This document shows, in pieces, positions 1 through 42,542 of a stretch of 64,000 nucleotides of DNA. The notes under the pieces were generated by a model. It ran no database searches. It was not told the origin of the DNA and saw nothing but the letters and a program-made list of their open reading frames with translations. The stretch is from contig JAAPAO010000007.1 in NCBI GenBank assembly GCA_013115145.1, positions 62,001-126,000 on the forward strand, in the 5' to 3' direction. The translations under genes were made by a program, and so were the position numbers. How positions within the stretch are numbered: the first letter of the stretch is position 1; each line of letters begins with the position of its first letter. Origin of the DNA: Perkinsus chesapeaki ATCC PRA-425 (lineage: Eukaryota > Protista > Perkinsozoa).

Positions 1-3000
1 TTCGCCGACAGGGTGCTGCCGAATCTGGCTACCGATCTGCAAGAAAGACTGGAACCTAGAGAAAGGTTATCCAACACGCTCAGCTTAGATGCCAGCCTGG
101 CGAATGACCTAAGTGAGATCGTAGAACCCAGGCTGCTCAATGATACGACAGAAAGGCTGGAGCCGGTACGCAGCAGGCCAAGTAACGAGAGGTCACAGCC
201 CATGCGAGTGAACTGCCGAACTGATAGAGAACTGCCCAAGTGAGTGAAGCCGATGGTGGATATCTTATAGATTGACCCTATCCTGGCGAGACCAAGGACA
301 GAAACACCACTACCTAGTCGAGTCATCGATCTTACAGACAGGCTGCTACCCAGGACGGCAAAGTCGACCAGAGTCAAGTCGCTTCCTAAGCGTGCGAAAG
401 ACCTCAGCGAAAGGGCGGAGCCGAAGTGGACGCTATCAAAGACTGATACTTGGCTACCAAAGCTTGCGGCGGAAAAAGCGGACATGACGCTACCAAACCT
501 TGCCGCCGACCTCAAAGAAAGCGAGCTTGCCAGGCCAACAAAATCGAAGACCGAATAGCAGCTGCCGAACCTAGCATAGCTCCGCACAGATAGGCTGCTG
601 CCAAGGTGAACTTCATCAAGTACAGAGAGAGCCGCTCCAACGCGAGACTGGGAGATAATCGACAGTCCGCTGCCGAGCCTGATAAAGCTCCTCAAAGACA
701 AGCTGCTACCGATGGCAGTAGAATCGAGAACAGTTAGCGACGAACTGAATCGCGCGAAAGACCTCAGCGAGAGCGAGGACCCGAAGCTGCTTTGACCGAC
801 CAGCGACATGGATGACCCCATGTAGCAGAACGATCGGAGAGAGAGCGTGCTACCGAATTCTGCCGAATCTAGTATAGACGTCTTGCTGCCGAGCCTAGCA
901 AACGACCTCAAAGAGAGGCTCGAACCGAAGAGGCCTCCAGCGATTACAGACAATTTATAAACCGAGCCGATTCGGGCAAGACCAGTTACAGATAAGCCAC
1001 TCCCGAAGCGAGCAACCGCGTGTAGTGACAACGAGCTCCCAAGTCCACAAGCGTCCAATACAGTCAAGCTCGCACCGAGTTGAGTGGAAGATAGAGCAGA
1101 GAGTGTGCTGCCAAATCGACTGAATGACCTCAGAGACAGCGAACTGGCTAGCTGAGAGGATGCAATCACCGACAGCTTGTAAACGGAGCCAACGCGTGCG
1201 AGGCCGTAAGCACTGATACCGCTACCGAATCGAGCTACGCTCCTCAGAGACAAGGAGCTGCCTAAGCCCACTGTGGCGAGGACAGTTAGGCTGGAGCCTA
1301 GTCGAGTCGAACCAAGAACAGACTGGGAACTACCAAACCTCATGAAGCTCCTGAGAGAGAGCGAGCTTCCAAGCAAAGCACCATCCAAGGCAGACAGACC
1401 GCTACCGAGGAAGCCACTGAGTGCTGCAGAGAGCGAGCTACCAGCTCTACAGAGGGACCGTACTGATAGAGAGCTACCAAGCTGCGCGTACCCAATGACC
1501 GAAGCCTTGGAGCCTAGGCGAGCAAAGGATCGGAGAGACAGAGAAGACCCGAATGCGGTACCGTCCAGAACGCTAGTGGACGAGCCCAGACGTGCAGCTG
1601 ATGCCGCGGAAAGGGTGCTTCCAAAACGCACGAGGGAACGCAAGGACAGCGAGCTGCCACAGGTTACGTGGTCTAGAACGGTAAGAGACGAACCTACTCT
1701 TGCAAGACCAACGGTAGACACCGCCGATCCGAGTCGAGCTATAGCCCGCAAGGACAAGGAGCTCCCGAGAGTGGTGAAGTCAAGAACGGATAGCTTGGAG
1801 CCAAACCTTGCGAGTGACCGAAGCGATAACGATGACCCACAAGTAGTTGCATCCAGAACGCTCATGGTGCCAGACAAGACGCTATCGCCGAACACCGATA
1901 CTGAGCTTCCTAGGCGGGCAAACGAGCGCAAAGATAAAGTGCTACCGAAATTGGTCATGCCAATCACGGAGAGTTCCGCGAGTGACTCAACTCGGAGCAC
2001 TCCGGCAACCGATAATCCGCTACCGGCTCTCACAACTGACCGGATTGACAGACTACTGCCAAGAGTAGTGAAATCAAGAACCGATAGATGCCCACTTAGC
2101 CTGGCGAATGACCGCAGTGAGAGTGACGATCCAAATGCTGCCTCACCAACCACGGATAAGGAGTCGCCAACCCGCAACCAAGAGTGTACCGAAAGCGAGC
2201 TACCAAGCCGAGCAAAATCTCTTAGGGACAGCGAACTGCCAAGTGTACAGACTTCCAAAGCAGAGAGCTTGCTACCTAACCTGGCAAACGATCGCATCGA
2301 CACCGATGAGCCAAAGCTGGCAAAGCTCAATACCGAAAGGTTTTCCCCTATCGATGCACCTTTCAGAGTAGAGATCGAGCTGCCGAGCCTTGCGAAGGCT
2401 CGGAGGGAGAGTGAGCTCGCGAAACTAGCCTGAGCTACGGCGGAAAGGCTATATACAGAGCCAATCCTTGCCAACCCAAGAACAGACACCGAGGAGCCGA
2501 GCCTCGCCATGCCTCTCAAAGACCAGGCGCTACCAAGTTTGACGAAGTCGAGAACGCTAGCTGAGCTTCCTAGTCTAGCAAATGATCGTAAAGACAGGCT
2601 AGATGCCAGATGTGTCTCTTTGACAACCGACATTGCATTACCGAGTCGGGCGCGACCCACTATCGAGAGGGAACTGCCGAATCTGGCGACGGACCTCAGG
2701 GACAGTGTACTGCCCAAAGCAGTGCATGTGAGCGCTGACAAGGAGCCTCCGAGCCTGGCGAAACTTCTTAGAGAAAGACTGCTGCCGAAGCCAGCGCTTC
2801 CTAGAACCGACATGCTGCTGCCAACGATCGCTTGCCCGAGGCAGGAAAGTGAGCTGCCTAACCTTGCCATAGCCTTCAATGAGACAGCACTACCGCAGTT
2901 CACGTAATCTAGTACACTCAATTTGCTGCCGAGTCTGGCAAAGGAGCGAAGAGAGAGCGAAGATCCCATGGCGCCTTGCCCGAGAACCGTGAGAGAACTA

Positions 3001-6000
3001 CCCGCGTTACAGCTACCGAAGGTCGACAGAGTGCTGCCGAGCCTCGACACCGCTCGTAAGCTAAGCGAGCTTCCAAATGATGCCCCATCGAAGATGGACA
3101 AGGTGCTACCGATGTTAGCTCTGCTGAAGACACTGAACGTGCTGCCGGCACGGCAAAAGCTTCTCAAAGAGAGACCGGAGCCGAAGGTAGCCATCGAGAC
3201 CGCTGAGACCGATGAACCTATACGCGCGACAGCTAAGACACTCAGTGACGATCCGGTTCGGATGAAGTTGCGAATCGACAGGGAGGAAGAGAACTGGGAG
3301 TATTCCACAACAGATAGGCGACCGCCGACTCTTGCTCGGCCGACAACAGAGACTTCACTGCCGAAGCGAGTAAATCCACGAACGGACATAGCTGAGCCCA
3401 TCAAGACGTAGTCGAAGATGGACACGGAAGAGCCTATCCTGGAAAGACCGAAGACCGAAAGCCTTCCACCAAGTCGACCAAAACTGGCCAGGGAAAGGGA
3501 GCTGCCGAAACCAGTGCAGTCGAGCACACTAAGACCCTTGCCTATGCGTGTGGAGTGGTATACTGAGGCAACACTGCCGATCCTAGCAAGAGAGCGTAGT
3601 GATAGAGCAGATGCGAGCGATGTAGCGTCGAATGCAGATAAGGTAGAGCCTAGACGCGTACTGGATAGCACACTCAAGTTGGAACCAAACCGCATAGAGG
3701 CTCGAAGGGACATAGAGCTACCTAGAGCCACATTGTCCAGAACCGACAAGGCACCGCCCATCCTAGCAGCGCTGAACATGGACAGCCCAGAACCCAGTCT
3801 GACGAAATCACGCAGCGAGAACGAGCTACCAAGGTTACAAAGCTCGAACACCGTGATGGAACTGCCGAACCTGGAGACCGAGCGGATCGAGAGGTTGCTG
3901 CCAAAATTAGCATAGTCGAAAACAGAGGCCGTACTACCGAGCCTACCGAAAGACCGCAGAGACAGTGACGAGCCGAAAGCAGATGCTCCAACGACCGACA
4001 GATCATGAAGGGAGCCGAGACGTGTGAGGCCGGCTACCGATACCGTGCTGCCAAACCTAGCGAAGGCTCTCAGTGATAGCGATGATCCCAAGTCGACGAA
4101 GTTCAGGACTGATATCGAGCTAGCAAGTCTGGATGCTCCGAACACCGAGAGCGTGCTGCCGAGCCGAGTGAAGGCGTTGAGAGAGAGGCTGCTTCCTAAG
4201 TTTGTCATATCAAAGGTCGAAAGGGGTTTGCCGTAGCGGGTTATCGCAGCAAAGGACACGCCGCTGCCAAACCTCATGAAGCTTCTCAAAGACAGGGAAC
4301 TTCCGAGAACTGCCGCGTCCGCAACAGACACTCTTGACCCGAACCGAGCAAATGATCGTAGGGAAAGAGATGAGCCAAATGTAGCACCTGCCACGACGGA
4401 AAGCTTGTACACAGAAGCCAGTCGAGTAACACCACCGACTGATAAGCCGGAGCCGAGTCGGGCGAAGCTCCTGATTGACAGGGCGCTACCGAAGATCATG
4501 GCATCAAAGGCAGATAGTCGCTTACCGAAGCGGCCAAAGGAACCAAGTGATACGGAGCTACCAAGATTCACCGAGTCGAGCGCACTAAGCGTCCTCGTTA
4601 AGCGAGAAAGACCGGTGATAGAGCAGCCGCTTCCTAGGCGCATCAGACCCCGGAGCGAGAGAGAACTGCCGAAACTGGTTGCGTCAAGAGCAGAGAGAGT
4701 TCGTCCAAACTGAGCTTGACTGAAAACGGAAATTTGGCTGCCGAATCGACCAAGGGACCGCAAGCTTAGTGAGCTGCCGAGGCTGACGAAATCAAATACA
4801 GAGGTAGGCGAGCCAAGTCGAGTGAAGCTGGTCACCGACAGAGTTGAGCCGAACGTACCATAATCGAGAACGGACAAAGCAGAGGCAAGCGTGGTAGAGC
4901 TATACACAGACATACTGCTGCCGAAGCGCGACACTGCCCGAAGAGAGAGGCTGCTACCGTAGGTCGTAGCATCGAGCACACTGAGAGAGTCACCGAGCCG
5001 AGCATCGGACATAACCGAAAGGACACTGCCTAGGCGCACAAAGGACCTCAGCGATAGACCAGATCCAAGTGCCATTGCACCCAATACACTCATAGAGCCG
5101 CTAACGCGTGACTTGCTAGTGAGTGACAGTGAGCTTCCCAGGCGAGCACTCCCTCTCAACGACAGGGAGCTACCGAGAGCAGCATAACCTAAGATGCTAG
5201 CGGATGCTCCGAGCCGTGCAAACGAGCGCAGAGAAAGAGAAGACGCCAGCTCTGTTTGGGCAATGACCGACAGCTTGAACACCGAGCCTATACGGGTCAA
5301 CCCAGCAACAGATAAGCCGCTGCCAACACGAGCGAAGCTGCGCACCGACAGAGAGCTACCCAAAGCAGTTCCAGCAATAACCGATAGCTTATATACAGAA
5401 CCTACCCGAGCCAAGCCAACAACGCTCAGACCGCTGCCAATTCGAGTGAACTGTCGAACCGATAAGGAGCTTCCGAGACATGCGTACTCCAAAGCACTCA
5501 AGGCACCGCTGACCCTGGCAAATGCTCGAACCGAAAGGGACGATCCGAGGTCAGTGAATCCGACCGCAGAGCAAGAGCCACCGAACCTAGCCCAACTAAG
5601 CGAGCTGAGGGCACTTCCAAGCCTTCCAGTACCAGCAACAGATATGCCGCTACCTAGTCGTGCGTGGGCACGGAGAGACATAGAGCTACCACAAGTGGCA
5701 AAGTCCATAACCGTGACTTTGGAGCCCATCCTGGCGAAGCTTCGCAAGGACAACGAGCTACCGAAGTCAGCTAGACTGGTTACAGACATGGTGCCCATAC
5801 CAATCATGTTGCCGACAATCGATAGAGAACTTCCCAATCGAGCAAAGCTTCTCAGTGACAAGGCGCTGCCGACATCAGTCTGTGCTATGACAGAAAGTCG
5901 GTACGCTGAACCCAAGCGGAGCAGACCGACCATTGACAAACCGCTGCCGAGTCTGGCTACATTACGGAGGCTCATGGAGCTACCACAACTAGCATAGTCC

Positions 6001-9000
6001 AAGACGGAGAGTTTGCTGCTAAGACGAGTGAGGCTTCGTAAACTGCATGAGCTACCGAAGCTAACTGCATCCAAAGCACTCAGTGTACTGCCGGTTCGTA
6101 ACCATCCCAGAGAGCTCGTCAATGAGCCGATATGCAGTCCAGTGGTAACCGATAGGGTGCTGCCAAGGCGACCGAATGAACGGAGGGAAAGGGTGCTTCC
6201 GAAGGAAGTGCACGCCAGGACACTCATCTTCTCTCCTACGCGTGCGAAGAACCTCAACGATAACGAGGAGCTCAATGATGCCGCTTCCAACACCGATACT
6301 TGACTCCCGAGTCGTCCAAATCCACGCAGCGAAAGGGTGGAACCGAAAGCAACTTCGTTAAGTACCGACAAGGTCGACCCTAAGTTTGTTGCGGCGAAAA
6401 CAGAAGCGACACTTCCCAATCTGGCCATGGTCCGTAAAGAGAGAGATGAGCCGAAGTCTGTGCTATCTAGGGCAGACAACTTGCTTCCGAACCTCGCTAA
6501 CGAGCGTAGTGACAAAGACGATCCAAATTGAGCTGCTCCTAAAATGCTTGTAGTGTCACCGAGCCGAGTCCAGGACAGTAAGCTCGCCGTCGAACCACCG
6601 CGTATCCCGTCGAAGACAGAGACAGTACTACCAAATCGAGCAAAGGAGCGGAGAGATAGACTGCTTCCAATAGCAACTTGGCACAGGGCGGAGCTTTGAC
6701 TGCCTAAGCGGGCAAACGATCGCAATGATAGGGAAGACCCGCAAGTGCTGCTGGCAAGAACTGAGATGGCACTGCCGCACCGAGACACTCCCGATACCGA
6801 TAGAACGCTGCCAAAGCGCACGAGAGTGCGGACGGATAACGAGCTTCCAAGGGTAACATAGTCCAGGATAGACGCAGATGAGCCAACACGGCCAAAGGAC
6901 CGGAGCGACAACGTTGAGCCAAAATTGCTGCAACCCAAAGTAGAGATAGAATCTCCCAGTCTAGTTGCTGACAACACAGAGGCCGTCGAACCAAGTCGGG
7001 CCATGGCTCTCAATGACAAGGAACTAGCAAAGCTTGATGTGGCGATAACAGATAGCTTATACAGAGAGCCAACACGTGCCAGGCCAGTCACCGAGATACC
7101 GCTGCCGAGTCTAGCCACCGAACGGAGGGACAACGAGCTCCCTAAGCATGCATAGTCAATGACCGTCGTTTTACTGCCGAGTCTAGCAAAAGACCTCAAG
7201 GACAGACTGGACGCGAAGGATGTCTTGCCCAAGGCAGACAAAGTAGAACCGAGCCTACACTGCGAGAACACGCTGGCGCTGCTGCCAAGTCTAGCAAAGG
7301 ATGTCAGGGAGAGAGCGCTACCCAGTAGTGTGAAGTCCAGTATGCTAACCTTAGAGCCGGTTCTAGCAAACGACCTCAGAGAAAGGGAGGAGCCAAGATC
7401 GGCGCAGGCGAGTGTGCTTGCCTTACTGCCGAAGCGAGCAAAGCTTCGCAAAGATAGCGAGGAACCAAAGGCAGTCGTACCGATGACGGACATACTAGAG
7501 CCGACCCGAGCAGCCCCATAAACCGAGCACGAACTACCGATCCTCAAAGCGGCCCTTAAAGACAGCGCACTGCCGAGGCAAGTACGATCAAGAACTGTCA
7601 ACTTGCTACCGAGCCTTGCAAAGCTTCTAAGGGAAAGCGATGAGCCCAGAGTTGCCTCTTCTACTGCGGAGAGAGATTGGCCTACTCTGACAAGCCCTTG
7701 TAGAGAGACATTGCTGCCTAGCCTGGCGAAGGATCGCAGAGACAAGGAGCTACCGAAGGTCATACCGGCTATGACGGAGAGGTCGTACACCGAGCCCAGA
7801 CGAGCTAGCCCGAAGACGGATACACCACTGCCGCAGCGAGCCATCGCCCGAACGGACAGAGAGCTGCCGATGAGCACGTAATCGAGAGCGCTAACCTTAC
7901 TACCAAGCCGGGCGAAAGATCTCAGGGACAGCGACGAGCCAAACTCGGTCTGCGCAAGGACTGATAGGGTGTCTCCAAGACTTGTAGAGGCAATCGCCGA
8001 TAGTGAGGACCCAACATTAACAGTACCAACCATCGAAAGGGAACTTCCGAGACGAGCGAAGCATCGCATAGATACGCTGCTGCCTAAAGTAGTGTAGTCC
8101 AAAGCGGAGAGCTTGCCACCTAGTCTGGCAAAGGTGCGAACGGACAAAGAGGAGCCAAGCTCAGCCTGTGCCACCGTGCTGAACCCAGAACCGAAGCGAG
8201 CAAAGGATCGCAAGGATAGAGAAGAAGCGCAAGTAGTAGCAGCTATAACGGAAAGCTTGTAGACCGATCCGATCCGAGCGAGCCCAACCACTGAAAGGCC
8301 GCTACCAACGCGGACAAATTGCCGCACCGACAGGGAGCTGCCGAGGTTTGTGAAGTCTAGAATACTAGTCTTGCTTCCGATCCTCGAGAAAGACCTCAAA
8401 GAAAGAGCGGAACCGAACTGGACGGAGTCTACTACGGACAATGTCGAACCCATCCTCGTATAATCAAGGACAGATAGCGAGCTAGATACTTGAGCTGCAC
8501 CAGTAACAGAGATGCAGCTGCCTAGACGGGCAAAGCTTCTCAGTGAGAGGCTGCTTGCGAGGTGCTGGGATGCTATCACAGAAAGCTTGTAAACTGATCC
8601 GATCCGGGTAAGCCCCTTCACAGACATACCGCTGCCAAGGCGTGCCATCGAACGCAGCGAAAGAGAAGAGCCCAGATCGACCTCAGATAGAACACTGCTG
8701 CTGCTACCAAATCGACTGAAGGACCGTATTGACAATGTGCTACCGATCTGACCGAAGTCGAATAAGCTCATCGACTGACCTAGTCGTGCAAGAGATTGCA
8801 GAGACATAGTGCTGCCGAGACGAGCACAGGACCTCAGTGAGAGAGAGCTGCCGAAACTCGCCTGTGATATCACAGACAAGGAGTATACTGATCCGACGCG
8901 AGTGAGGCCAGTGACAGATAAAGTACTCCCGAGGCGAGCGGTACCACGCACCGATAACGAGCTGCCAAGTTGTACAAAGTCAAGCACGCTAGCGTAGCTC

Positions 9001-12000
9001 CCGAGACGAGCGAAGGACCTTAGCGACAGCGAGGAGCCGAATGCAGTTGACGCCACCGCTGATAGAGAACTGCCGAGCGATGCAGTCTGGACGACTGACA
9101 GCGAGCTACCAATACGAGCTAAGCTCCGGACCGATAGCGAGCTAGCAAGAGTTGTGTAGTCAAGGACTGAGACTGAGCTACTTAAACGAGCAAAGGACCT
9201 CAGTGACAGCGTAGAGCCAAAGCTCCCTGCAGACAAGACTGAGACGCTACTGCTAATACGGGCCAAGCCGGCTACAGAAACACTACTTCCCATCCTGGCC
9301 ACTGCTCTTAGAGACAAGGAGCTCCCGACGGTTGTAGAGGCTATAACAGAGAGCTTATACATTGATCCAACTCTGGTGAGACCGAGGACCGATAGCCCAC
9401 TGCCGAGCCTTGCGAATGCGCGCAAGCTGAGCGAGCTTGAAAGACAGGCCGTGTCAACCACAGAGAGCTTGCTGGCCAGTCTGACGAAAGAGCGCAGAGA
9501 GAGGGAAGATCCCAAACCGATCTTGCCGATAACACTGAGGCTATCCCCGACGACACTCTTCCCGAGGACAGAGACTGTGCTGCCTAGCCTCAACATATCT
9601 CGCAAGGACAGGGAACTACCTAGAGTAACAAAGTCTAAGACAGTGACGTCGCTTCCAAGTCGAGCAAAGGAGCGCAAGGAGAGCGACGAGCCCATAGTAG
9701 ATGCGGCGATCACAGAAAGCTTGTAAACCGAGCCCACGCGACAGAGGGCCGCAACCGATATACTTGAGCCGAATCGAGCGATGCTGCGAACAGATAAACT
9801 GCTGCCAAGTGAGACCGCATCAAGCACCGATAAGCCGCAAGCGAGACGACCAGCAGCGGTCGCAGATAAGCTACTACCGAGTCGAGCGAAGCTCCTCAAA
9901 GACAGGGAGCTACCGAAACCCGAGTCGTCAATCACAGAGAGTCTATAAACGGATCCAACGCGAGCTAGGCCAAGCACAGAGATTCCGCTACCGAAGCGAG
10001 CAACGCTGCGTAGAGACAGAGAGGAACCGAAGTGGACAGCATCCAAAGTAGAAAGGGTCTCGCCTAAGCGGGCACGCGACACTGTCGATAGACCGCTTCC
10101 GCAACGACAGAAGTCACGTAGAGACAGAGAACTGCCGAGAGTCGTGAAGTCAAGAATAGACACACTGCTGCCGAGTCGAGCGAATGAGCGAAGAGATAGC
10201 GATGAACCAAATGCGGAGGTTGCTATAACTGATAGGTCATATACCGAGCCGATTCTCGCTAGACCTGTTACGGAAAGACCGCTGCCGATCCTGGCGAATG
10301 ATCGCAAAGAGAGCGAGCTCGCTAGGTTAGATGCTGCAATTACCGATATGCGGTAAACTGAACCTATTCTAGCTAGGCCACAAACTGACACACCGCTTCC
10401 GAGTCTTGCCATGGACCGTAGAGAGAGCGAACTCCCCAACAGACTGTAATCCAGTACAGTGACTTTACTGCCACACCGAGCAAAGGAACGGAGCGACAAG
10501 CTCGAGCCGAACTCCGTTGCGCTCATAATCGAGAGGGCAGAACCGATAGTTGCCGAGCTCAGTGTAGATAGGCCACTACCCAAGCGAGCAGCTGCACGAA
10601 CTGAGAGGGTGCTGCCTAGCACGAGGAAGTCGAGAACCGAAGCCTGGCTTGCTAAGCGAGCGAAGCTGCGTAATGATAGAGATGATCCTAACTCACTCTG
10701 TGCAATGATCGATAACGACTCGCCCAGTTCGGCACTGCCCAGGACAGATATAGAGCTGCCGAGACGAGCGAAGCTCCGCAGTGACAGAGAGCTTCCGAAA
10801 CCACTACAAGCGATAACCGAGAGCTGATACACCGATCCTACACGAGCGAGCCCATAGACAGAGGCTGAAGACCCAACGCGAGCTACACCACGTAAACTAA
10901 GAGAGCTCCCGAGAGTCACGAAGTCGAGAACGCTCAGTTTGCTACCGAAACGGGCGAAGGACCTCAGAGACAGCGAGGAGGCCAAACTTGCGTCGGCTAT
11001 GGTAGAGAGCTTGTAAAGGGAACCAAGACGCACTAAACCGGTTATCGAAATACCGCTGCCCAACCTAGCAAAACCTCTGACAGAGAGGGAGCTACCGATA
11101 CCCACGGCTGCGATAGCAGATAGTTTATAGACGGACCCTACCCGTGTGAGACCAGTAACAGAGAGGCCACTGCCGAGGCGAGCCATGGACCGCAGTGACA
11201 GGGAGCTACCGAGAGTGATGCAACCAAGAACTGTCGACGCACTCCCTAGCCTGGATAGAGAACGTAGGGAGAGGGACGAACCAAAGGCTACTTGGCCGAT
11301 AGTAGAGAGGCAGCTGCACATTTGCACCCGGCTAAGCACAGAAAGGCCACTGCCAAGCCTAGCAATAGCGCGAAGAGACATAGAGCTGCCCATTATAGCC
11401 TGATCTATCACAGACAGCTTATAAACAGATCCTACTCTGGCCAACGATGCTACGCTAATACCACTGCCGAAGCGCACAAACGACCGAAGGGAGAGTGAAC
11501 TGCCGAAGGACGCAGCTCCGATCACACTCAAATTGCTGCCCAGTCTGGCCATGCCTCGAAGAGACAGTGTAGAGCCAAATGACGCAGCAGATATGAGACT
11601 CATGGAAGAGGAGAGTCGAGCCCAACCTAGTATTGAGAGATGCGAACCAAACCTGGCACACGATCTTAGTGAGAGGGCGCTGCCAAGGTAGGCGCTGTCG
11701 ATGGTTGACAGCTTATAGAGAGAACCAATACGTGCTAGGCCGGTGACGGACACTCCACTGCCAAATCTGGCTACACCGCGGAGCGACAAAGCACTACCGA
11801 GAGCAACGTTGTCCAGAACAGTGAGTTGGCTTGCAAGCCTAGCAAACGAGCGCAGCGAGAGGGAGGATCCGAAGTGAGCGTCAGATGCTACTGAGAGAGC
11901 AGCACCCAACTGAGAGTCGGCGAAAGCAGAGATAACACTTCCAAAGCGTACAAGAGATCGAACAGACAGGCTGCTACCGAGGGTGGTGAAGTCGAGGACA

Positions 12001-30000: not shown

Positions 30001-33000
30001 AATGAGCTAATGCTACTGCCGAACCGACTGAACGAGCGGAGTGACAGGGAGCTGCCCAAAGTGGCGAAGTCAAATACAGACAGCGAGCTGCCAAGTCTTG
30101 ATACGGATAGGATCGAGACTGTAGAGCCTACTCGAGCCAAGTTTCTAAGAGAGATTGCGCTGGAGAGGCAGGCGAAATCAAGCAGCGACAAGGAAGACCC
30201 GAGGCGCGCACAGCTCAGAGCTGTTAGTGAGCTACCCAACCGGAAAAAGGCTCTTGTAGAAAGAGAGCTGCCGAGGTGGGCCTCCGAGACCGTGGAGAGG
30301 TAGGCTCCGGTTCTCATGCCATCGGCGACGGACAGACTGGATCCCAGACGAACATGAGCACGCAGGCTTAGAGAGGATCCAAGGGTTGCATAGTCTACCA
30401 TGGACATGGAACTACCAAACCTGGAGGCGCCGAAGAGAGATATAGTAGAGCCCATGCGAAAGAAGCTTCTTAATGACTGAGAACTGCCGAGGCTGACCCA
30501 GTCGAGAGTGGACATACTGCTGGCTAGCCGGGTAACCGAGAAAACCGAGAGCGTGCTGCCCACTCGGGAAAAGGTCCTCAAGGATAAGGAGGAGCTCATA
30601 CTGCTGTAGTCCAGAACAGACATAGAGCTAGCAAGTCTAGCTAGACCAATAACAGATATCGCAGAGCCAGCTCGGGCAACGGCTCGGATGGATAAAGTTG
30701 AGCCGAAGGAAGCACTATCTAGCAAGGACATGCAGCTGCCGAACCTCACCATACTGAAGACCGATAGCCTGGAGCCCAGGCGAACGTAGCTCCGCAGAGA
30801 GCAAGAGCTGCCAAAGTTGGCAAAACTTAGGACTGATGCGGACTCACCGAGCCTGGCCAAGCCAAACATAGACAAGGAGCTACCGAGTCTAGCTAGGGAC
30901 CTTACCGACATGGAGCTGCCCAAATGTAGGAAATCTAACACGCTCGCACTGGAGGCGAGACGGTTGCGGCCCACAGTAGAGAGAGCGCTACCGAGGCGGG
31001 AGAATCCTCGAAGACTAAGAGAACTACCCAAGTGGACGAAGTCAAGGGTGGACATACTTCCACCTAAACGGTACGATCCGAATGCAGAGACGCTAGATCC
31101 GAGTCGAGCAAATGACCGCAGGGAAAGGCTACTGCTGAGTAGAGCCTGACCACAGGCTGACAAGCTGTCACCGACTCGTGCACGGCCAAAAGCTGACAAA
31201 CTACTACCAAACCGAGCAAAGGTTCTCAAAGAGAGGCTGCTGCCAAGCCGAGCGAAATCCAGAACGGAAACGCTGGAGCCGAGCCGAGCGCCTTCTAGAA
31301 GGGACATAGAGCTACCGACGCGGAGAATCTTACGGATAGATAGAGCACTGCCCAAAGAAGCAAAGTGCATAACGCTCATGCTACTGCCAAATCGTGCACC
31401 GGCAAAGACCGAGAGGGTAGAGCCCAGCCGGGCAAAGGAGCGCAGGGACATGCTCGACGACAGCCGGGCGGCGTCGAGAACGGATATAGATCCGCCTACC
31501 CTGGCTAAGCCGAACGCAGAGAGGCAACTACCGAAGCGGGCCAAACCGCGGATTGAGATCGAAGAACCAAGGTGGGTAAAGTCAACCAGTGATATCGATG
31601 AACCGAATCGACCGACACCAAAGATGGAGAGGCTGCTGCCTAGGCGGCCATAGGACCTAATGGACAAGCCCGATCCAATTTGGAAGAAATCAGTAACCGA
31701 GATGGGAGCCACTGCTCGGAGCTCTCCAGTAATAGAGACCGAGCTGCCCATCCTGGCAACACCACGCAGCGATAGACAGCTGCCGAGCATGAGATAATCT
31801 AGAACAGACAGAGAACCAGCGAGTCTCGTTCGATCAAATACTGTCAGACTGCTGCCCAGTCTGCTGACACCTCGTAGTGAGAGAGTAGAGCCTAGCTGAG
31901 CAAAGTTGAGGATCGAGACCGATGAACCGATCCGACCTCCACTCAATGTTGACAATGAGCTTCCTAGTCGCATCGCTGCACGAAGAGATAGCGACGAGCC
32001 AAGAATGAGGTAGTCCAGAATGGAGGTAGAACGGCCTATTCTAGTATTAGTGAACACTGATAGAGAGGAGCCGAGTCTGGCCAGAGACCTGAGGCTCATC
32101 GAGCTGCTGCTCGCCACGCAGTCCATCACCGATAGTGCGTCTCCAAGCCTTGACAGCCCATAGACAGAGATATAGCTGCCCATTCTGGAGACAGACCTTA
32201 CCGATAGTGAAGAGCCAAATTGTGTGTAGCTCAAAGCCGAGAGCACGCTGCCGAATCGGGCAAGACCGTACACACTAACAGCGCTACCAAAGCGCATGAA
32301 GGAGCGCAGTGACATCGTAGAGCCAAGCATGACAAAGTCTAGGATAGACCCGCTGCTGCCTGCCCGGAGTAGCGAAACCATCGACAGAGATGATCCCAGC
32401 CTAGCAGTTGACCGAAGGGAAAGACTGCTGCCAAGAGAGGCGAACTCCACCAGTGACATACGGCTGCCGAGACGGGCCTCACCGAAGGTCGAAAGATATG
32501 ATCCGAGGCGAGCGAATGATCTCAGAGATAGGGTACTACCAAGCTCGACGGAGTCAAGTGTGGATAGCGTTGACCCCAGCCTGCCCATACCAAACAACGA
32601 AAGCGCCGAGCCACCTCTGGTGAATCCTCGAATAGACAAGGTACTGCCGAGATCGACGAACCCCAAGGTGGAGAAGGAGCTACCACAGCGGGCCATGGAG
32701 AAGGTCGAGATGGTGCTCCCGAGACGAGCGAAGGTCCGGAGGGACAGAGAACTCGAAACGGCAGTGTAGTCGAGAGCCGATAAGGATGCTCCAAAGCGGG
32801 CAGTGCTGCACAAGGACAGAGTGCTGCCAAGGCGGCCAGTTCCCCGGACACTCAGGCTGCTACCCAGCTGAAGGAAATCCAAGACAGTTGCGGAGCATCC
32901 CAGTCTGGCAAGGTCGAACATCGACAGTGAGCTACCGAGCCGAGCGTAGGTCTGTAGGGAGAGGGAACTGCCCAAGTGGAGGAAGTCGAGCACAGAGACA

Positions 33001-36000
33001 GAAGATCCGAGCCTGGTCCTGTCGAAGGCCGAGACCGAGCTGCCAAGTCTAGAGAAGCTCCTGAGAGATAGAGAGCTGCCAAGGTGGCTGTGATGGAGAA
33101 CGGAGAGAGCGCTGCCCAGCCGAGCTACACTGTAAACCGATACACTTGAGCCGAGGCGCGCTGTAGATCTAAGGCTCAAGGAACTTCCTAGAGTGGTCGA
33201 ATCGAACAGAGATATGGTAGAACCGAGTCTAGCACAAGAGAAGGCACTCAGTGTGCTGCCAAGCTTGAGGAAGCCTCTAGCACTGATAACGGAGCCGGTC
33301 CACAGAGAACCATGGATGGAGAAAGTGCTGCCTAGGCGAGCATAGGATCTGATGGATAAAGCGCTACCAAGGCCACTGTAGTCCAGGACAGATAGCTTCT
33401 TCCCAAGCCTCGCCCAGGAAAAGACTGAGATGTTGCTACCGAGACGAGCGCATGCTCTGACCGACAGGGAGCTGCCCAGGGCAAGATAGTCCAGTATGGA
33501 CAAGGAGCTGCCAAGCCTCGATGAAGAGTACACTGACAACCCGGATCCCAGGCGACCGGTAGCCCGCACGGAGAGGGTCGATCCCAGATCGCAGAGCTGA
33601 CGGGCCGAGAAGTAGTCTGAGAGCTGTGTCGAGCCGAAGACTGAGAGAGTACTGCCCAGTCTGATGAAGGACCGTAGGGACATCGACGACCCGAACTGGA
33701 CGTAGTCGAACACTGACGCTGAGGAACCGAGACGAGAATACCCAAAGACTGACAGAGCGCTGCCAGCTCGGGCAAATGACCTAACCGATAGCGTCGACCC
33801 TAGTGTGGCGTAGGCGAGCATGGAGAGATCACTACCGAGACGGGCTGAGCTGAAAGCCGAGACCGAGCTGCCGAACATGCCCATAGCACGGAGAGATAGG
33901 GAGCTGCCCAGCCAAGAGTGATCCAGGGCGCTGATCAAAGATCCGAACTTGGCCATGCCGTACAGAGACAGGGTGCTACCCGAGCGGACAAAGCCTCGCA
34001 GAGAAAGCGCGCTTCCTAATGCGACAAGGTCGACAGTGCTGAGCGACTGGCCAAGCCTAGCGCCACTGAAGACCGTGAGGCTGCTTCCGGCACGGAGAAG
34101 CCCACGCAGCGACAGGGAGCTACCTACCAGGCTGTAACCGAGGACAGAGATGCCAGATCCGATGCGAGCGGAGCCAAAGGAAGACAAGCTCGACCCTAGA
34201 CGGGACATGGCTCGGAGGGAAAGGGAGCTGCCGAGATCAGCCCACGCCAGGCTCGAGACAGAGCTTGCGAGCCTGGCAGCTGCTGCCAAGGATAAAGTAG
34301 ATCCGAGCCTAGCCACTGCACGCAGAGACATCGACGAGCCGAGAGCGAGGAAGTCGAGAACCGACGAGCTGCCGCCGATCCGCGCTCCACAGAAGGTCGA
34401 GAAGGTAGAGCCAAATCGAACTAGGGACCTCACAGAGAGGGCGCTGCCGAGGTGGGAGAAGTCACAGACGGACATCCCCATACCCAAGCGGGCCGAAGCA
34501 TAGGACGACACCGATGACCCAAACCTCATCAATGAACGCATGGACAGTGAGCTTCCAAGCCCGACACAGTCCAGGACCGAAACGGTGAGCCCCAGTCTGG
34601 TCGTAGAGAAGACCGACGCCATTCGACCAAACCGAGCGTGCTGCTGGAGGGACAAGGTGGATCCTAGGGTAACGTAATCGAGAACGGAAAACGAGCAACC
34701 GAGGCGACTTAGACCGGCCACCGAGAAGGCTGATCCGATGCGAGCATGGCCTCTCAAGGAGAAGGCACTACCAAGATGAACAAAGTCGAGGACCGAAACT
34801 GAGTCGCCCATCCGGCTCATACCGTATACCGAGATGCGGCTCCCAAACCGAGAGAAGTCCCTAAGAGATAGAGAAGATCCTAAAACAGTGAAATCAAGCA
34901 CGGAAGACGACGAGCCTAAAGTAGACACTCCGAACAAGGACATGGTGCTGCCGGCACGAATGACCCCACGAACCGATAAGCACGAGCCTAGTGCGCTGAG
35001 GTCTAGAACACTGAGACCGGAGCCGAGCCTAGTAGTGCCGAATATAGAAACTGTGGAGCCCATCCTAGCAGCTGACCTCAGTGAGAGTGCCGAGCCAAAC
35101 GACAGCTGCCCTAGAACCGAAAAAGAACTACCTAACCTCGAGGTGGCGTACACAGATAGGGTACTGCCTAGCCTCGAACTGGACCGAATACTCATGCTAG
35201 AACCCATTGTGAGGTAATCGAGCACCGACAGGCTTTGGGCGAATCTGCTCGCTGCCGCAACCGAAACGGTGCTACCAGCTCTAATGAACGAGCGAAGAGA
35301 TAGAACACTGCCAACAGCTACGAAGTCCAACACTGAGATGCTACTGCCAAACCGTGACACGCCATAGGTCGAGACGTGGCTGCCTAGGCGGGCCACTGAC
35401 CGCAGGGACAGTGCGCTGCCCAACGCTGTGAAGGTCATCACAGACAGAGCCGAGCCTAGCCGCGTCGTCGCCAGGAGAGAGATAGTACTCCCAAAGCGAG
35501 CAAACGAACGTATTGACATGGACGAGCTCAGTGTCGCGAAGCCCAGACTTGAAATCTGAGAGCCGAACCTTGTCTGGCTGAAGACCGAGATAGTGCTTCC
35601 GAGTCGGATAAGGCTGCGTAGAGAGAAGGCACTGCCGAGGTTCACGCAGTCATACGTGGACAGTACGCTGCCAAGGCGAGCCAAGCTAAAGACCGATACT
35701 GCAGAGCCAGCTCGGAAGAAGGCCCTCAACGACATGCTGCTGCCCAAGGCCAACATGTCCAACATAGAGACTGAGCTGCCCTGGCGAACCTTACTATAAA
35801 CCGAGAGAGAGCTACCGAACCTCATGCTCGAACGGATGGACATGGTACTGCCCAGGTTGACAAAGTCTAAGACAGACATGCTGCAACCGATGCGAGCCAT
35901 GCCGTAGGCTGAGCAGCTCGAGCCGAACCTAGAGAAGGATCTTATAGAGATAGCACTGGCTAGGTTGGTAAGGTCCAAAATGGAGAGAGAACTGCCCATA

Positions 36001-39000
36001 CGAGCTTGGCCAAACAGACTGAGCGTGCTGCCAAAACGGGCAAAGTTGCGGACGGAGAGGGAGCTGCCGAGGGCCATAAACCCGAGGGTCGAGACCGAGC
36101 TAGCCATTCTCGCCACAGCAAAGACCGAAAGACCGCTGCCAGCTCTGGCGAAAGTTCTCAATGAGAGTGACGAGGCACAGGTGGCGAAATCTAGCAGGGA
36201 TATCTGCGACCCTAACCTGGCCATACCAACCACAGAAAGGCTGCTGCCGAGGCGAGCAAAGGATCGCAGTGACTGGGTCGAGCCTAGAGCCGCAAAATCG
36301 AGCACAGTAACGGTGTGGCCGAAGCGCGCTAGACACTCTAAGGAAAGAGAACTGCCAAGGCGAGCAAATGCCCGTAGAGAGAGAGCACTGCCACCTAGGC
36401 TGAAGTCTAGCACAGAGAGGCTAGAGCCAAGTCTGGAGCAACCGAAAACTGAGACCGAGCTGCCAACTCGACCCAAGGCTCGTACCGATAGTGCAGAGCC
36501 AATGGCTACGCTGTCCAAAGCGGAGAGTGTGAGACCAAGACGAGCTCTGCTGAATACACTGAGGGTGCTGCCGAGCCGAGCGAACTGACGCATGGAGACA
36601 GTGCTGCCAAAGTGGGCCGCGCTAACCACGGAAAGGTGACTTCCTAGTCTACAGAGACCGAAGGCCGAGACAGAGCTACCAAAGCGAGCCAAACCACGCA
36701 GAGAGAGAGCGCTCCCCATAGCCGAGAAGTCGAGAACGCTGGCGGTACTTCCAGCACGAAGACAACCAAACGTCGATACCGTAGAGCCGAAGCGGGCGAA
36801 TGACCGCAGTGATATGGTGCTGCCGATCAGTGTGTAGTCCAGCACCGACAACGAGGACCCGAGCCTCGCCCAACCGTAGGCTGATAGAGTACTGCCGAGC
36901 CTGGCCTGGCCACGGAGAGACAGCGATGAACCCATCAATACAAAGGAGAGAGCAGACAAGCTGTCACCGAATCGGCTCAGGCAGTGGGCGGACAAGGCAG
37001 AGCCGAGCCTGGTAAAGGCTCTAGTGGAGAGTGCCGAGCCGAGGTTGATGAGGTCCAGCGCTGTAATGCTGGCACCGATGCGAGCCAGACCGACCGTGGA
37101 TAGAGCGCTGCCGATGCGGGCCAGGTTACGAAGAGATAGGCTGCTACCGAGCTGGAAGAAGTCTAGGATGCTGACTGTCGATGCCAGACGGGCTAGGCCG
37201 ACCAAAGAGAAGGAACTGCCAAATCTGCCGAACTCCCTCAAGGACAGTGAGCTGCTCAGTACAGCAAAATCTAGTATAGAGGCTGATGAGCCAAACCGCG
37301 CCAAACCAAAGGCAGAGACAGTCGAGCCCATACGAAGGAAGGACCTCAGTGAGAAAGTGCTGCCTAAATGGGCAAAGCCTAGCACGGAGAGAGAGGTGCC
37401 GAGCCGAGCTTGGCCATAGACAGACAGCGCAGAGCCGGCCCTTGCCGCCGATCTCAAAGACATGGACGAGCCCAGGTGAACCCAGTCCAGGACGGACACA
37501 CTGCTGCCGAGCCTCGCCATACCGAAGGCTGAGACACTTGACCCGAGCCTGGAGAAGGACCGGAACGATAGCGAACTGCCAGTGTGAGCGTAGTCTAGAA
37601 CGGATAGATTATCGCCTATGCGAGCACCGGCCACCAACGATAGAGAGCTGCCGACCCGGACGTACTCCCTAAGGGACAAGCTGCTTCCCAGAGTTGAGGA
37701 GTCCAGGAGTGACAGAGCCGAACCGAAGCGTCCAAGACCGCACACTGACAGAGCACTGCCGAGCCTGTTCACCGCTCTGAGACTCAGGGAGGATCCCAAA
37801 GCCGACGCATCTAGTATAGAGAAGCCGCTGCCCATACGGAAATGGGTGTGCATGGACAAGGACGATCCTAACCTTGCTGCTGCTCGAAGAGACAATGTGC
37901 TGCCTAGGGCTATAGAGTCCAGGACAGATAGGCTGGAACCAATACGAGCCAGACCATAGAAGGAAAGGCCAGAGCCAAACCTAGTAAAGCCTCGGATGCT
38001 CATCGCCGAGCCGAGGTTGGCGAAGTCCAAACCGGAAAGCGACGAGCCGAACCGTGCCATGCCGTAAACCGACACCGATGAGCCAGCTCGAGCGAAGCGA
38101 TGAAGAGACAGAGAGGATCCCATGGTTGTGAAGTCGAGCACCTGAAGAGCAGCATGTCAGCCAGGCGGCAGGCTCGTACACTTACGCTCAGGCTGGCGCC
38201 AAGGACGGCACGATCGAATATACTGCACGAGCTACCTATCCTAGCAAAGCCTCTCAGACTCAATGACGAACTCAGAGTTGTGAGATCCAGAACGGAGAGA
38301 GATGCTCCGAACCGAGAGGTTCCGTATCTGAGGACGCCTTCAACGGTCTAGGGGAGAGAGGCACGTACAGAGAGGCTGAGCTGCCCAGTCTCATGAAGGA
38401 CTGCAAGGATAGTGCGCTGCCGATATTGATGAAATCTAATGTGGTCAGAGATTGGCCCATACGAGCTCGACCTAACAAACGACTATCGCTGAGCATGTAT
38501 TCGAAGCTCGACCCTTACCTGCAACCGACATGTAGCTTCCCAGTCTGAAGGATGCCCTTATCGATGCCGAGCTGCCCAGAGCAATCTACACAGGCAGCGC
38601 TCATCCAGGCCGCTCCAGGCCGACGAGTATTTCCTTACCCAGTCCAGTACGGAGAGGCGGCTTCCAAGCCTTGTTGTGCCATATAAGGACAGTGCGCTGC
38701 CAATCCTGGCATACGTTCGGATCGAGGTCGAGCTACCGAACGTTGCATAGTCCAGAACCGATAACGACGATCCAAACATCTAACAAGAGTAATCCGGGGA
38801 GGAACAGAGGACGGTCCTACCGCCGAGTTGAAGAGAGATAGGCCACTGCCAAGCTTAGCGAAGTTGTATACAGACAGGGAGCTGCCCATTGAGACATAAT
38901 CGAAGATGCTGACCGTGGAATGCAGAACTGCTGAGCCGTACACCTAATAGGCAGACAGTAAGAGTGTATTTCCATACGTTAAGGAGATCCCTACGCTGAG

Positions 39001-40162
39001 ACCGTAGCCAGACTCTGGTGCACCACTTTGAGGATCTGTAGGCTCCGAGTTACCGATGTTGATGAAGCCCTAAACATGCCATCACCGGCTGTGCTAGCTA
39101 GGATGTCCTACGTGAACGGAGAGGCTGGATCCGACTCTACCAACCTCCTGGACGCTTATGGTGCTGCCGAGGCGGACAAAGGACCGCACAGACAGGGTCG
39201 AGCCGAGCACCACACGGTCGTACATATGCCTACAGACAAGCAAACCAACTCCATCGAGATGAGGCCCCCAACATTCAACCTACACATAGTTCCCCAAGCG
39301 AGCGAATCCCATAACGGAGATCTGTGGTCTCTTTGATGCATCTGGATCCTCGGGGTCGTCGGGTTTACCTAGGCAAGTGGAGGGTGAAGAGTCCACTGAG
39401 ATCAGACCACATCGCACCAGGTCGCTTGGTCGAAATCCAGAGATTCGAGAAGAACTGAGCCTGCCTCCAGAAGGCCGACTCGCCCGTCACCGACAACGCA
39501 GCCGAGAAATGAACGGCTTCTTCAACCTGGCAAGCATCCGTGGGAAGCATATCCTGCCCGTCCCATGGCGTACCGAAAGCGACTTCTTAAAGACGGCCAC
39601 GTCGAGCACCTCCATTGAACTGTTAAATATGGCCTTTTTGTAATATCGAGGGAGCTCAGCTAACATGCCGAATTCAAGTAGATAACTTTCAAAAGAGTCT
39701 ACCTGAACCATCCGGTGCAGCTATCATAGCTCCTCCTTCTCGTTGATCATCCAACATCAATATCAACACTGATACCGGATCGGCACCTAGGATGCATAAC
39801 TATCTCGTCAGCAGGCGCCGTCTTCTTCATGCTCACCGATGATGTCGTGGGCCATAATGTGTAAATCGGTCTTCATTTCAACTCCTGTAAGTTCTTTTTT
39901 CGCCACAAAATCCCACTGTGGCAGGCCGTGCTTATTCAAAGCAAACCTCGAGGCCTATACCCGCAATACCAACGCTCACATAGGCAGCATCCAGCCTACC
40001 TGTGCGGGGCTGGGGTCGACCGTCAATGGCCCCAACAGTGTTATATCACCACGTCGACCAACTAGCACCCACCCTTGGACGAGCTGAAATGACGGAGTAA
40101 ATAGAGCATTCGGCGGTGTAAGGATCTACCTGTAGTGGCAGGATTAATAACCACAGTATCAT
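1..40162 (-). CDS. Giant secreted tandem-repeat protein (at least 13,169 aa, 3'-truncated by the window); about 1,050 copies of a 12-aa Ser/Leu/Gly/Arg-rich repeat, probable beta-solenoid
   Basis: Manual translation of the minus frame (codons at + positions 3k..3k+2) gives e.g. LGSSLSCRSVARFGSTLSA at 3-59 and ARFGSGLSVTGLARIGSVYKLSVI near 950-1020. The ORF track lists no minus ORF in this frame over 1-38 kb while both other minus frames are fragmented, as expected if the frame is stop-free to the window edge. Spot checks found no stop; I did not check every codon. Exons (+ coordinates): 40130-40162, 40000-40083, 39837-39954, 39703-39786, 39574-39659, 39418-39526, 39284-39368, 39112-39229, 38995-39069, 38821-38943, 38639-38779, 38519-38585, 38369-38471, 38186-38327, <1-38141. 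All introns are GT-AG and all phases are consistent. The N-terminus is MILWLLILPLQLVQG-WVLVGRRG (signal-peptide-like). Confidence 0.9.
38142..40129 (-). other. Cluster of 14 short spliceosomal introns (41-54 nt) of the giant repeat gene
   Basis: Introns at 38142-38185, 38328-38368, 38472-38518, 38586-38638, 38780-38820, 38944-38994, 39070-39111, 39230-39283, 39369-39417, 39527-39573, 39660-39702, 39787-39836, 39955-39999 and 40084-40129. Example: 38142-38185 reads GTAAGTG...CTCTTCAG on the minus strand. Removing them restores an open frame and the repeat register. The donor of 39369-39417 (GTGCGA) is the weakest call. Confidence 0.85.
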
Positions 40163-41338
40163 TATATGCAACCAAGTGTGCATGGAACAGGTATGCATCT
40201 TATTAACAACCTGAATCAGTTATATAGCGTGTTGTGATGGTGGTGATGGTGATGCTACTCTCTTTAAATGAATTGTCAACCTTGCTGTATCGATAATAGC
40301 AGAGGCCGAATTATGCCATGCCCAAGGTACTAGCCTTGTCCGGGTCAAAATCCCGAAAAAGGTGAAACCTACCAAAACCAAAGCCATTTATCGTACGCCC
40401 CAGGTTTGAATAGACTAGGTCATCGTAGCAGCTATATTGATGCAGATGCAGATATACATCGCGGATTGTAATGATATATATCTTAATTTGTGCGGACGTA
40501 CTAGTCGATTAATACCACTAATATTCACATTATAACAGGCGAAGAGGAGGTGAATAGGTCAGAAAGAGAGTGTTCAGCATGGATAGAGGCCGTCATAGAC
40601 GAGCATCTATCTTTAGGAGCTATATTAAGATCCAATCGGTATCGACAGAGATAGCAACATCGTTTAGCGTATTAATTAACGAACCCAACAAGCACTGATA
40701 TGTGATATAATATCATCATAGATCGTCGAGTTCATTATTAACCCATCGGAAGGATAAACATCAGATTTACTAATAGGATTCATATCGTTTAAATTAAATT
40801 TGGCTGACAGCAACCAGCCCGAACATCACAAAATCCACACTTAAAACGATGTGAGAAGGCTCAAAACCGGATGATAACCACCATCAAAATAAGCTATAAC
40901 ATTATTAGAGTCAAACCGCACAAATAAGACTGTTAACAGCGTCATAGTGGAGTCAGTACAAGCAGCGCAAGCGGCCATCTCGAGCAAGTTCCGATCAGTT
41001 TCAATCTTGCGCTGTCACTTGCTTATCTTGCATTTCTTGTATTTTCTCAACGCAGCGCGCTATAACGCGTGTCGATCACGTCGCAACACTCGAAAATTTG
41101 TATGGAGTTGCTACTCCTCACTCTACTGATAAGCTCTGTATTTCCTGCTTGGTTCGTCATTACGTAATACGAACATGGCATAGTAAGCGGAGCAATATCG
41201 TATCTAGTGATCATCGGGCTCGCTTTATCCTGTGCTCGTCGAGTGTAGGATTGACCAGTGTATCGCACACTTAACATTTGACAAATAGACTAATACTGCT
41301 ATCAGCGGTCCTCGTGGTCATTGATATGGCTCACAGGC

Positions 41339-42380
41339 ATGTCCCACCTTAAGCGAGCAGACGGTTCCGAGCTACCGAAAGGGTTATCGGCTTTGTACAA
41401 GTAAAGAGGGAATGTCGGTTAAAGCCTTCTACTTTATTATAGGCGGTTTTCGCAGAGCAGCTATAGTGATGACGACAAGGAAATGAATAAAGACACGGAT
41501 GACTTGGACCATCTTAAAATATTGTTGGCCATTGAGGCTAGTAGACGGAAGAAGGCCACACAGTAGGCATGCATATCCAAGGTCGACCCGTGCACCACGG
41601 CCTCACTTAGCGATCTGCTCAAGATGAGACGGGCCCATGATCAGCAGTTTCTAGAGGAACAGCGCGTCAAACGAGCCGTTTTCGAAGAGAAGGATCGCGA
41701 GGTGAGGGAATGATGGTTAGCACGCAAGCCGCCGAGGAAGCTTAGGTCACCGACCTCCTGGATGAGCTCCACAGGCTCAAGTTCAACAACCAAACTTTGC
41801 GCCACAAACTCCAATCAAGAGAAGCACTCCGTTCTGCTTCCGACTATAAGAAACTGGTAAATCTAACTGAACATACGATCCAAGGCTGGCTTGTAGGTTA
41901 GCGAATGTAATCGATCATCGAGTCGCACTAGCGATGCTGCTCCATCCAAGAGTGCCCGTATGGCAAAGGAACACAACACAACCACTGAAAGTTCCCGGCA
42001 GCTTGTACGTCCTGCCACACGGGAGCCGCCTCTCGCCGGCAGCGAGACAGCACTCGTGCAGAAACCTCATGTGACTTCTGAAGACGTCGGTGGAGCAATC
42101 ACAGTTCCTAAGGTCCGGTCGACATCGAGCGCTGGCCAGGTTCGGTTGGCTACGGTATGATGATACAATGTAGACAGTGAGCAAGTGCTTCGTGGGTTCA
42201 GGCTGGCCAGGAACCGTGGGACAAGCGGCTGGAGCGTAAAGTGGCGATGCATCGCAAAAATGAAGAATTGCAGAAGTCTATCTGGGACATGTACTCGTTC
42301 GTTCACTTAGTTGCCGGTTTGAGTCTCCGAGTCTGTAGGTATTATATTTGGCATGATTCCTTCAACTACCATTAGCTACC
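41339..42380 (+). CDS. Hypothetical multi-exon protein with coiled-coil segment
   Basis: Splicing short GT-AG introns gives MSHLKRADGSELPKGLSALYKRFSQSSYSDDDKEMNKDTDDLDHLKILLAIEASRRKKATHDLLKMRRAHDQQFLEEQRVKRAVFEEKDREVTDLLDELHRLKFNNQTLRHKLQ.... No family recognised; the start and 3' end are approximate. Confidence 0.6.
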
Positions 42381-42542
42381 ATTTACCATGCTTAGGTGTT
42401 GTAACATCATAATCATCATCAGCTTGTGTTAGCTTTAGTTCTCATTACTATAAACTCACACAAGGAGAGGTAACGACAAAATCTTGGTTGTATAAAATCA
42501 TCATGCTTAACAATACAAATTAGTCAGATCAGGAACGACTAC

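Follow-up and report, generated by a model that had tools for sequence, protein, structure and literature searches.

The window analysed here is a stretch of 64,000 nucleotides (nt) from Perkinsus chesapeaki ATCC PRA-425 (GenBank assembly GCA_013115145.1, contig JAAPAO010000007.1, positions 62,001 to 126,000 of the forward strand), and coordinates given below are window positions unless another record is named. Its left-hand part carries one giant gene on the minus strand, in which a series of micro-exons encoding a putative leader and a conserved head module opens into a very long exon made of dodecapeptide repeats, which continues past the left window edge. To the right, after a gap of about 4 kb, lies a plus-strand gene for a pyruvate:NADP+ oxidoreductase (PNO). 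The giant gene probably encodes the shaft protein of an extracellular glycofibril of the type recently described as TLP-12.

Between positions 38156 and 3, the minus frame runs through 12,718 codons with zero stops; the remaining five frames over this interval contain 194–766 stops each. About 250 stops are predicted from the frame's own position-specific base composition, against none seen (P ~2e-109). The translated frame consists of 24% Ser, 16% Leu, 11% Gly and 8% Arg, with Pro accounting for 5 of the 12,718 residues and A for only 7.5% of second codon positions. GC content is uniform across the repeat region (0.54–0.58), and the strong AT skew seen there stops at around 38–40 kb. On the plus strand, 36 of the 45 ATG-started open reading frames (ORFs) of at least 60 amino acids (aa) share one frame. 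A sequence-only reading that preceded this analysis had placed every such shadow ORF in a single frame, which holds for these 36 and fails for the others; the same reading had anticipated a minus frame free of stops and a single exon of at least 38 kb, and both are confirmed.

The array bears the marks of protein-level constraint. Unit-against-unit identity is 0.43, 0.57 and 0.29 at codon positions 1, 2 and 3, respectively, where chance at position 3 is ~0.27, and identity at the amino-acid level is 0.40. Both codon families are used for the invariant Ser (TCN and AGY), for Arg (CGN and AGR) and for Leu (CTN and TTR), and Tandem Repeats Finder reported just two tiny arrays in 40 kb of DNA. In addition, the stretch 35762–35874 (minus strand) has a variant copy in a contig from sample S2 (an allele or else a recent paralogue) that differs at 17 sites, with 15 of the 17 changed codons synonymous and the remaining two encoding M>I and L>M (P of at least 15 of 17 changes falling at codon position 3 = 4.5e-6). 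Because identity at position 3 is at the chance level and only two of the 17 variant codons change the residue, the array is an old repeat under purifying selection on the protein and neither a recent amplification of DNA nor a relic; satellite and pseudogene readings were dropped on this codon and variant evidence.

Dynamic-programming segmentation divided the giant exon into 1,054 units, 1,018 of them exactly 12 aa long, and the product as a whole contains ~1,077 dodecapeptides; autocorrelation of the array shows peaks at multiples of 12 only. Numbered from Gly1, the unit consensus reads G-S-S-L-S-[LV]-[RL]-x-[FL]-A-R-[LF]. Gly1 is present in 87% of the 1,054 units, Ser or Thr at position 2 in 84% and Ser or Thr at position 5 in 99%, and 874 units carry Ser or Thr at both of the latter positions. 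Two zones emerge from the segmentation. Zone I (12942..38141, minus strand, ~700 units) is a regular triplet of unit types A (LGSSLSLRSFAR), B (LGSxLSVxGxAR) and C (LGSSLSVLDFxx), which together make a 36-residue super-repeat, with the A-B-C order strict over the exon's first ~6,000 residues; autocorrelation reaches 0.51 at lags of 36, 72 and 108, compared with 0.38 at the remaining multiples of 12, and in successive bins of 100 units Gly1 is kept in 85–93% and Ser or Thr5 in 100%. Zone II (1..12941, minus strand, ~350 units, open at the left window edge) mixes interspersed A-C pairs with 14-residue variants of the forms xGSVY[KQ]LSVIAxx and xGSGxSVxGLAR[VI]G; all 29 of the 14-residue units lie at or below position 12,941, and the 36-residue periodicity decays there.

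No non-repeat insert longer than one unit interrupts the giant exon, which therefore contains neither a hidden intron nor a globular domain. The part of the product encoded in the window has a mass of 1.345 MDa, close by itself to the 1.4 MDa or more that had been projected for the protein, and an isoelectric point (pI) of 11.7. A Pfam scan of three 1,000-aa pieces of the array returned sub-threshold noise only, with no Hexapep, no Bactofilin and, as expected beforehand, no catalytic domain. The core is strongly basic (1,067 Arg against 404 Asp plus Glu in 13,169 residues) and poor in Pro (21 residues) and in N-x-S/T sequons (15); its charge may be balanced by acidic glycans.

Upstream of the giant exon, which begins at an AG acceptor (38142/38141) and extends on the minus strand from 38141 to beyond window position 1 with its frame still open, repeat units switch frame across short GT..AG gaps. 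Splicing across these gaps gives a stop-free total of 13,169 codons in 15 exons: 14 micro-exons, then the giant exon with no fewer than 38,141 nt. The 14 introns between them are all GT..AG, 41–54 nt long and in phase; the sequence-only reading had arrived at the identical total, likewise with 14 upstream micro-exons. The last eight introns were placed by the 12-residue register, which continues over the junctions; for the non-repeat 5′ part, stop-free splice paths were ranked by splice-site weight matrices and by the length range of the eight register-fixed introns. The first 175 residues spliced in this way can be aligned over their whole length with the N-terminal parts of two homologues, P0141 (E 2e-40) and P0151 (E 8e-39), which supports the first six junctions. 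Intron 6 (39369–39417) was chosen over a second candidate by the alignment of AQFFSNLWISTKRPG with AQFYSSIYISSQRPG, and the exon 4/5 junction, which falls inside a 10-residue gap of the P0141/P0151 alignment, is the least certain.

Exon 1 (40130..40162, this and all following exons on the minus strand) supplies the ATG (40162–40160) and most of the leader (MILWLLILPLQ). P0141 and a further homologue, P0118, begin at the same hydrophobic leader; translation might instead start at one of two in-frame ATGs further upstream (40198 and 40183). After intron 1 (40084–40129, 46 nt, GT..AG), exon 2 (40000..40083) encodes the end of the leader (LVQG), a predicted signal-peptidase site (VQG↓W) and the onset of the head motif, WVLVGRRGDITLLGPLTVDPS. 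Exons 3–5 (39837–39954, 39703–39786 and 39574–39659), given by the best splice path and aligned with P0141 and P0151, hold the rest of the head module (~residues 16–120) and then the first degenerate repeat units (FNSSMEVLDVAVFKKSLS). Early dodecapeptide units, partly degenerate and interrupted by one short non-repeat insert (GFINIGNSEPTDPQSGAPESGYGLS), fill exons 6–9 (39418–39526, 39284–39368, 39112–39229 and 38995–39069) and exons 10–14 (38821–38943, 38639–38779, 38519–38585, 38369–38471 and 38186–38327).

The hydrophobic N-terminus (MILWLLILPLQLVQG) closes with a small-x-small site and is followed directly by the conserved motif W/F-[VI]-L-V-x-x-x-G-x-I-T-L/F-LG. Five relatives have equivalent sites in the same alignment column (ARA↓W, VRC↓W, AQG↓F, ADA↓F), a pattern that points to a cleaved signal peptide and agrees with the secretory N-terminus proposed at the outset, now seen as a signal-peptide-like leader kept in relatives. 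Behind the leader stands a conserved non-repeat head module of ~100 residues, which might serve as an anchor or a cap; head modules of the homologues matched no Pfam family, and AlphaFold2 (AF2) run on the module with its homologues gave no usable model (predicted local distance difference test, pLDDT, 33.5).

Relatives are numerous: at E ≤ 1e-3, phmmer returned 1,385 representatives, of which 53 reach E ≤ 1e-30; the strongest matches, to repeat proteins with a C-terminal Peptidase_S74, go down to 1e-105 at 36–40% identity. Those with names belong to Vitrella, Symbiodinium, Durusdinium and Perkinsus olseni, which bears out the resemblance to protist repeat proteins put forward by the sequence-only reading; one of these named relatives is a Trinity transcript. 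The longest close relatives (P0001, P0003 and P0013) carry a Peptidase_S74 domain (PF13884) after their repeats, and a search for relatives of 5,500–17,500 aa found none. P0141 derives from an ENA metagenome scaffold of an uncultured relative (L001:8521–18362, plus strand), on which leader, head and first repeats form one intron-free ORF of 404 aa, followed by a change of frame, with a possible tiny intron near 9670–9700, and then by an array of 2,895 codons that leaves the contig end.

A further comparison is the locus in Perkinsus olseni (JABANM010004015.1, assembly GCA_013115895.1). Its deposited hypothetical protein, KAF4749888.1 (421 aa), corresponds to the micro-exon 5′ end alone, and downstream of it the reading frame stays open, without annotation, for 3,464 codons or more (L002:1917–12308, plus strand). 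The two loci share the leader, the head motif (WVLVGRDGTITFLG), the micro-exon 5′ end, the unit consensus and the 12/36 periodicity, and GC content is also alike (55.8%); they differ in that the arrays are ~48% identical and the first 66 N-terminal residues, which comprise the leader and the beginning of the head, 36% identical, with no similarity at the DNA level. The Perkinsus olseni locus is a diverged orthologue or paralogue. As Perkinsus olseni has the same gene plan and its deposited model stops at 421 aa, this plan is conserved across deep divergence and routinely missed by annotation.

A known system matches the repeat. TLP-12 is a fibril from pond water with a 3.0-Å structure by electron cryo-microscopy (cryo-EM), in which three chains of dodecapeptide repeats intertwine in a triangular triple beta-sheet (bioRxiv 10.1101/2025.09.30.679562). 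Its unit, GSxxSx7, has an invariant Gly1 and is O-glycosylated on Ser2 (7 or more sugars) and on Ser5 (11 or more sugars), with strands beta1 at positions 4–6 and beta2 at 10–12, a rise of 9.6 Å and a twist of −11.3 degrees (bioRxiv 10.1101/2025.09.30.679562). Its candidate precursors are giant alveolate proteins, of which ~150 are listed from six alveolate species or strains; one of them, A0A8J1ZHD7 of Amoebophrya sp. A120, spans 19,853 aa with 1,263 GSxxSx7 repeats and ends in an intramolecular chaperone autocleavage (ICA) domain (bioRxiv 10.1101/2025.09.30.679562). The family is described in this single preprint only (CryoSeek; bioRxiv 10.1101/2025.09.30.679562).

The present gene resembles TLP-12 in its dodecapeptide with invariant Gly1 and with Ser at positions 2 and 5, in its more than 1,000 tandem units, in giant size and alveolate host, and in having relatives with a C-terminal Peptidase_S74 domain; two short beta-strands per unit are also predicted for it. 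The strands come from an AF2 monomer of a 216-aa segment (self-alignment, pLDDT 66.5), which contains beta structure only and places two strands in each 12-mer, at the TLP-12 positions; an Atlas shape search with this monomer gave nothing informative. Differences lie in the 36-residue A-B-C super-repeat, the zone with 14-residue variants, the conserved leader and head, the 14-micro-exon 5′ end and the basic core of pI 11.7, none of which appears in the preprint main text; that text makes no mention of a signal peptide, a super-repeat or a head module (bioRxiv 10.1101/2025.09.30.679562).

On the match of the unit motif, the S74-bearing relatives and the strand positions in the AF2 monomer, we assign the gene to TLP-12: with a probability of about 0.8, it is a gene of a myzozoan alveolate, perkinsid-like in structure, that encodes a TLP-12-type glycofibril shaft protein. 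Its product is most likely an extracellular structural fibre, with secretion and fibre formation both predicted from the sequence. The sequence-only reading had also proposed an extracellular structural fibre, and that part stands; it had called the system undescribed, and that part does not, as the GSxxSx7 fibre (TLP-12) had appeared in a preprint of October 2025. The gene is thus a new member of a recently described fibre family and not a new system.

Several points weigh against this assignment. The S74/ICA end of the present gene would lie beyond the left window edge and is projected from relatives, just as its trimer and glycans are projected from TLP-12. If the ATG at 40162 is used, the leader has 15 aa and lacks a basic n-region. 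The AF2 monomer found no match in the Protein Data Bank (PDB) by Foldseek (best E 0.43), and a sequence search of the PDB returned no TLP-12 chain, only weak echoes of LpxA (E 0.045). Two small RNA runs of the same species (~4 Mb of contigs) yielded nothing from the region, and no sequencing run is listed as containing the stretch as RNA.

The faint LpxA echoes of a hexapeptide beta-helix also feed the best-surviving alternative, that of a real giant repeat protein built as a single-chain beta-solenoid or some other non-TLP-12 assembly, such as a wall component, an adhesin or a cytoskeletal polymer like bactofilin or a hexapeptide beta-helix. The AF2 monomer is a regular all-beta repeat, and some distant bacterial relatives have Bactofilin matches. 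We nevertheless regard this as unlikely: neither Bactofilin nor Hexapep appeared in the three array samples scanned, the periodicity is 12/36 and not 6/18, and the G1/S2/S5 dodecapeptide fits the density-derived motif of TLP-12. Furthermore, the closest long relatives possess the trimerising S74 chaperone, and a 36-residue super-repeat equals two turns of a triangular helix with 18 residues per turn, as in TLP-12.

The next alternative, which we consider very improbable, holds that the array is in part an artefact of assembly—mis-joined, expanded or collapsed—and that the true gene is shorter, longer or interrupted. The window is carried by an 84,329-bp contig of run X1, in which window position 1 is position 54,754, and this lone long contig may be the window's own source; the protein-level sequence is highly repetitive, and the second-sample contigs are short, with many joints having sides of 20–30 nt. 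Nevertheless, these contigs (0.4–1.5 kb; X2, X3 and X5), which come from a different sample, tile both of the 6-kb stretches tested at 99–100% identity, with 0–1 differences. The units are too diverged in DNA to be confused, as shown by the two tiny arrays from Tandem Repeats Finder and by longest exact internal repeats of only ~70–80 nt, and few mis-joins would leave reading frame and 12-residue register intact across 38 kb. Least credible of all is a non-functional relic or non-coding satellite left open by biased composition, for although second codon positions are poor in A and the two small RNA runs gave no match, the stops predicted at that very composition are absent, the peptide motif persists where position 3 is saturated and variant codons are mostly synonymous, and Perkinsus olseni shares the gene plan at 48% protein identity without detectable DNA similarity.

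The X1 contig also indicates how far the gene extends, for it runs on for 29.6 kb to the left of the window, and exact same-strand matches to the array, 42–78 nt long, reach its position 76,923 (window −22,168). Since both contig and array continue leftwards, we put the giant exon at some 60 kb or more and the whole protein probably at 20,000–22,000 aa, with the window covering the 5′ two-thirds of the gene. Near-matches to the array, with 1–5 mismatches in ~40 nt, also occur on the opposite strand of another X1 contig (72,320 bp), which points to one or more further giant genes in this genome, paralogous to the present one.

If the gene is of TLP-12 type, its product could be assembled as follows. 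The leader would send the chain co-translationally into the endoplasmic reticulum, where a C-terminal Peptidase_S74/ICA domain would nucleate a trimer of three chains. From there, folding would proceed towards the N-terminus, yielding an intertwined triple beta-helix of triangular cross-section with two short strands per 12-mer, after which the ICA domain would remove itself by autocleavage. Outward-facing Ser2 and Ser5 would gain large O-glycans that merge into a continuous glycan shell. At 0.78–0.96 nm per unit, the fibre would measure ~0.8–1.0 µm for the part encoded in the window and ~1.4–1.8 µm for the whole gene. Such a fibre might belong to a surface coat, a wall or a flagellar hair, or take part in host interaction.

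More tentatively, and with odds that we place well below even, the A-B-C super-repeat may act as a built-in register code against slippage among three chains of ~20,000 residues and, together with the head, define a perkinsid sub-type of glycofibril that follows an assembly rule of its own. The unit types differ at a few residues: Arg7 in A, Gly8 in B and Asp8 in C, with Arg11 in A and B only. As the 12-mer of TLP-12 spans two sides of the triangle, 36 residues would make exactly two turns, so that each unit type would come to lie on a fixed face. Such fixed faces would stack charged corners in a set order and could thereby serve as a vernier while the chains zip up from the C-terminal chaperone.

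Among other fibres, phage tailspikes and tail fibres with a C-terminal Peptidase_S74 (endosialidase K1F, the T5 L-shaped fibre) and metazoan MYRF are alike in presumed assembly logic: in these, the S74 domain brings three chains together, acts as the template for a triple beta-helix and finally releases itself by self-cleavage, steps that are conjectural for the present gene. In contrast to the phage fibres, the present gene is nuclear and eukaryotic, is interrupted by spliceosomal introns and encodes a putative signal peptide; its shaft exceeds theirs 100-fold in length and is built from another repeat, there is no phage-type enzymatic or receptor-binding head, and no S74 domain was seen in the present window. 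TLP-4 (tetrapeptide), TLP-3 (tripeptide), TLP-2 (dipeptide) and the Chlamydomonas mastigoneme protein MST1 are likewise extracellular fibres with mostly O-linked glycan on a simple repeat; they differ in having extended linear or polyproline-type backbones, without a folded 12-mer triple beta-helix and without sequence similarity to the present gene.

The genomic context is not viral, given 14 spliceosomal introns and a eukaryotic PNO neighbour, and viral contigs, when scanned, yielded no close relative. A language-model feature search of the Atlas with 36861–38156 (minus strand) had unnamed clusters as its nearest neighbours (scores 0.96–0.97), the few labelled members of which are Nucleocytoviricota. 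The PNO gene (44185–49404, plus strand) is an intron-free ORF of 1,739 aa that encodes a PFOR-cytochrome P450 reductase fusion with the domains POR_N, POR, EKR, Fer4, Flavodoxin_1, FAD_binding_1 and NAD_binding_1. The assembly collection has no entry for this exact product. Its best named matches are in Amoebophrya sp. A120 (64%) and Prorocentrum (56%), and metagenome proteins come closest overall (74%); these matches and the gene plan shared with Perkinsus olseni identify the host as an alveolate. The interval between the two genes (40200–44100) is richer in AT (GC ~0.45–0.50), has no ORF of at least 150 aa and is the presumed site of divergent promoters for the giant gene (minus strand) and PNO (plus strand).

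TLP-12 fibres have hitherto been particles from pond water, with candidate genes known from a motif search only. The first gain from this locus is a complete, homology-validated 5′ gene model of a TLP-12-type gene, comprising leader, head and 14 micro-exons, and the structural detail added to it consists of the 36-residue super-repeat, the zonation of the array and the basic core. Genome annotation misses or shortens such genes, as in Perkinsus olseni, where the model ends after 421 aa. At a probable 20,000–22,000 residues, most of them in one exon of ~60 kb or more, we take the product to rank with the largest proteins known, and its exon with the largest known coding exons. Perkinsids, including Perkinsus, can be grown in culture, which makes the location and role of the fibre directly testable; if the register reading is true, it would also open a route to the purpose of the fibre.

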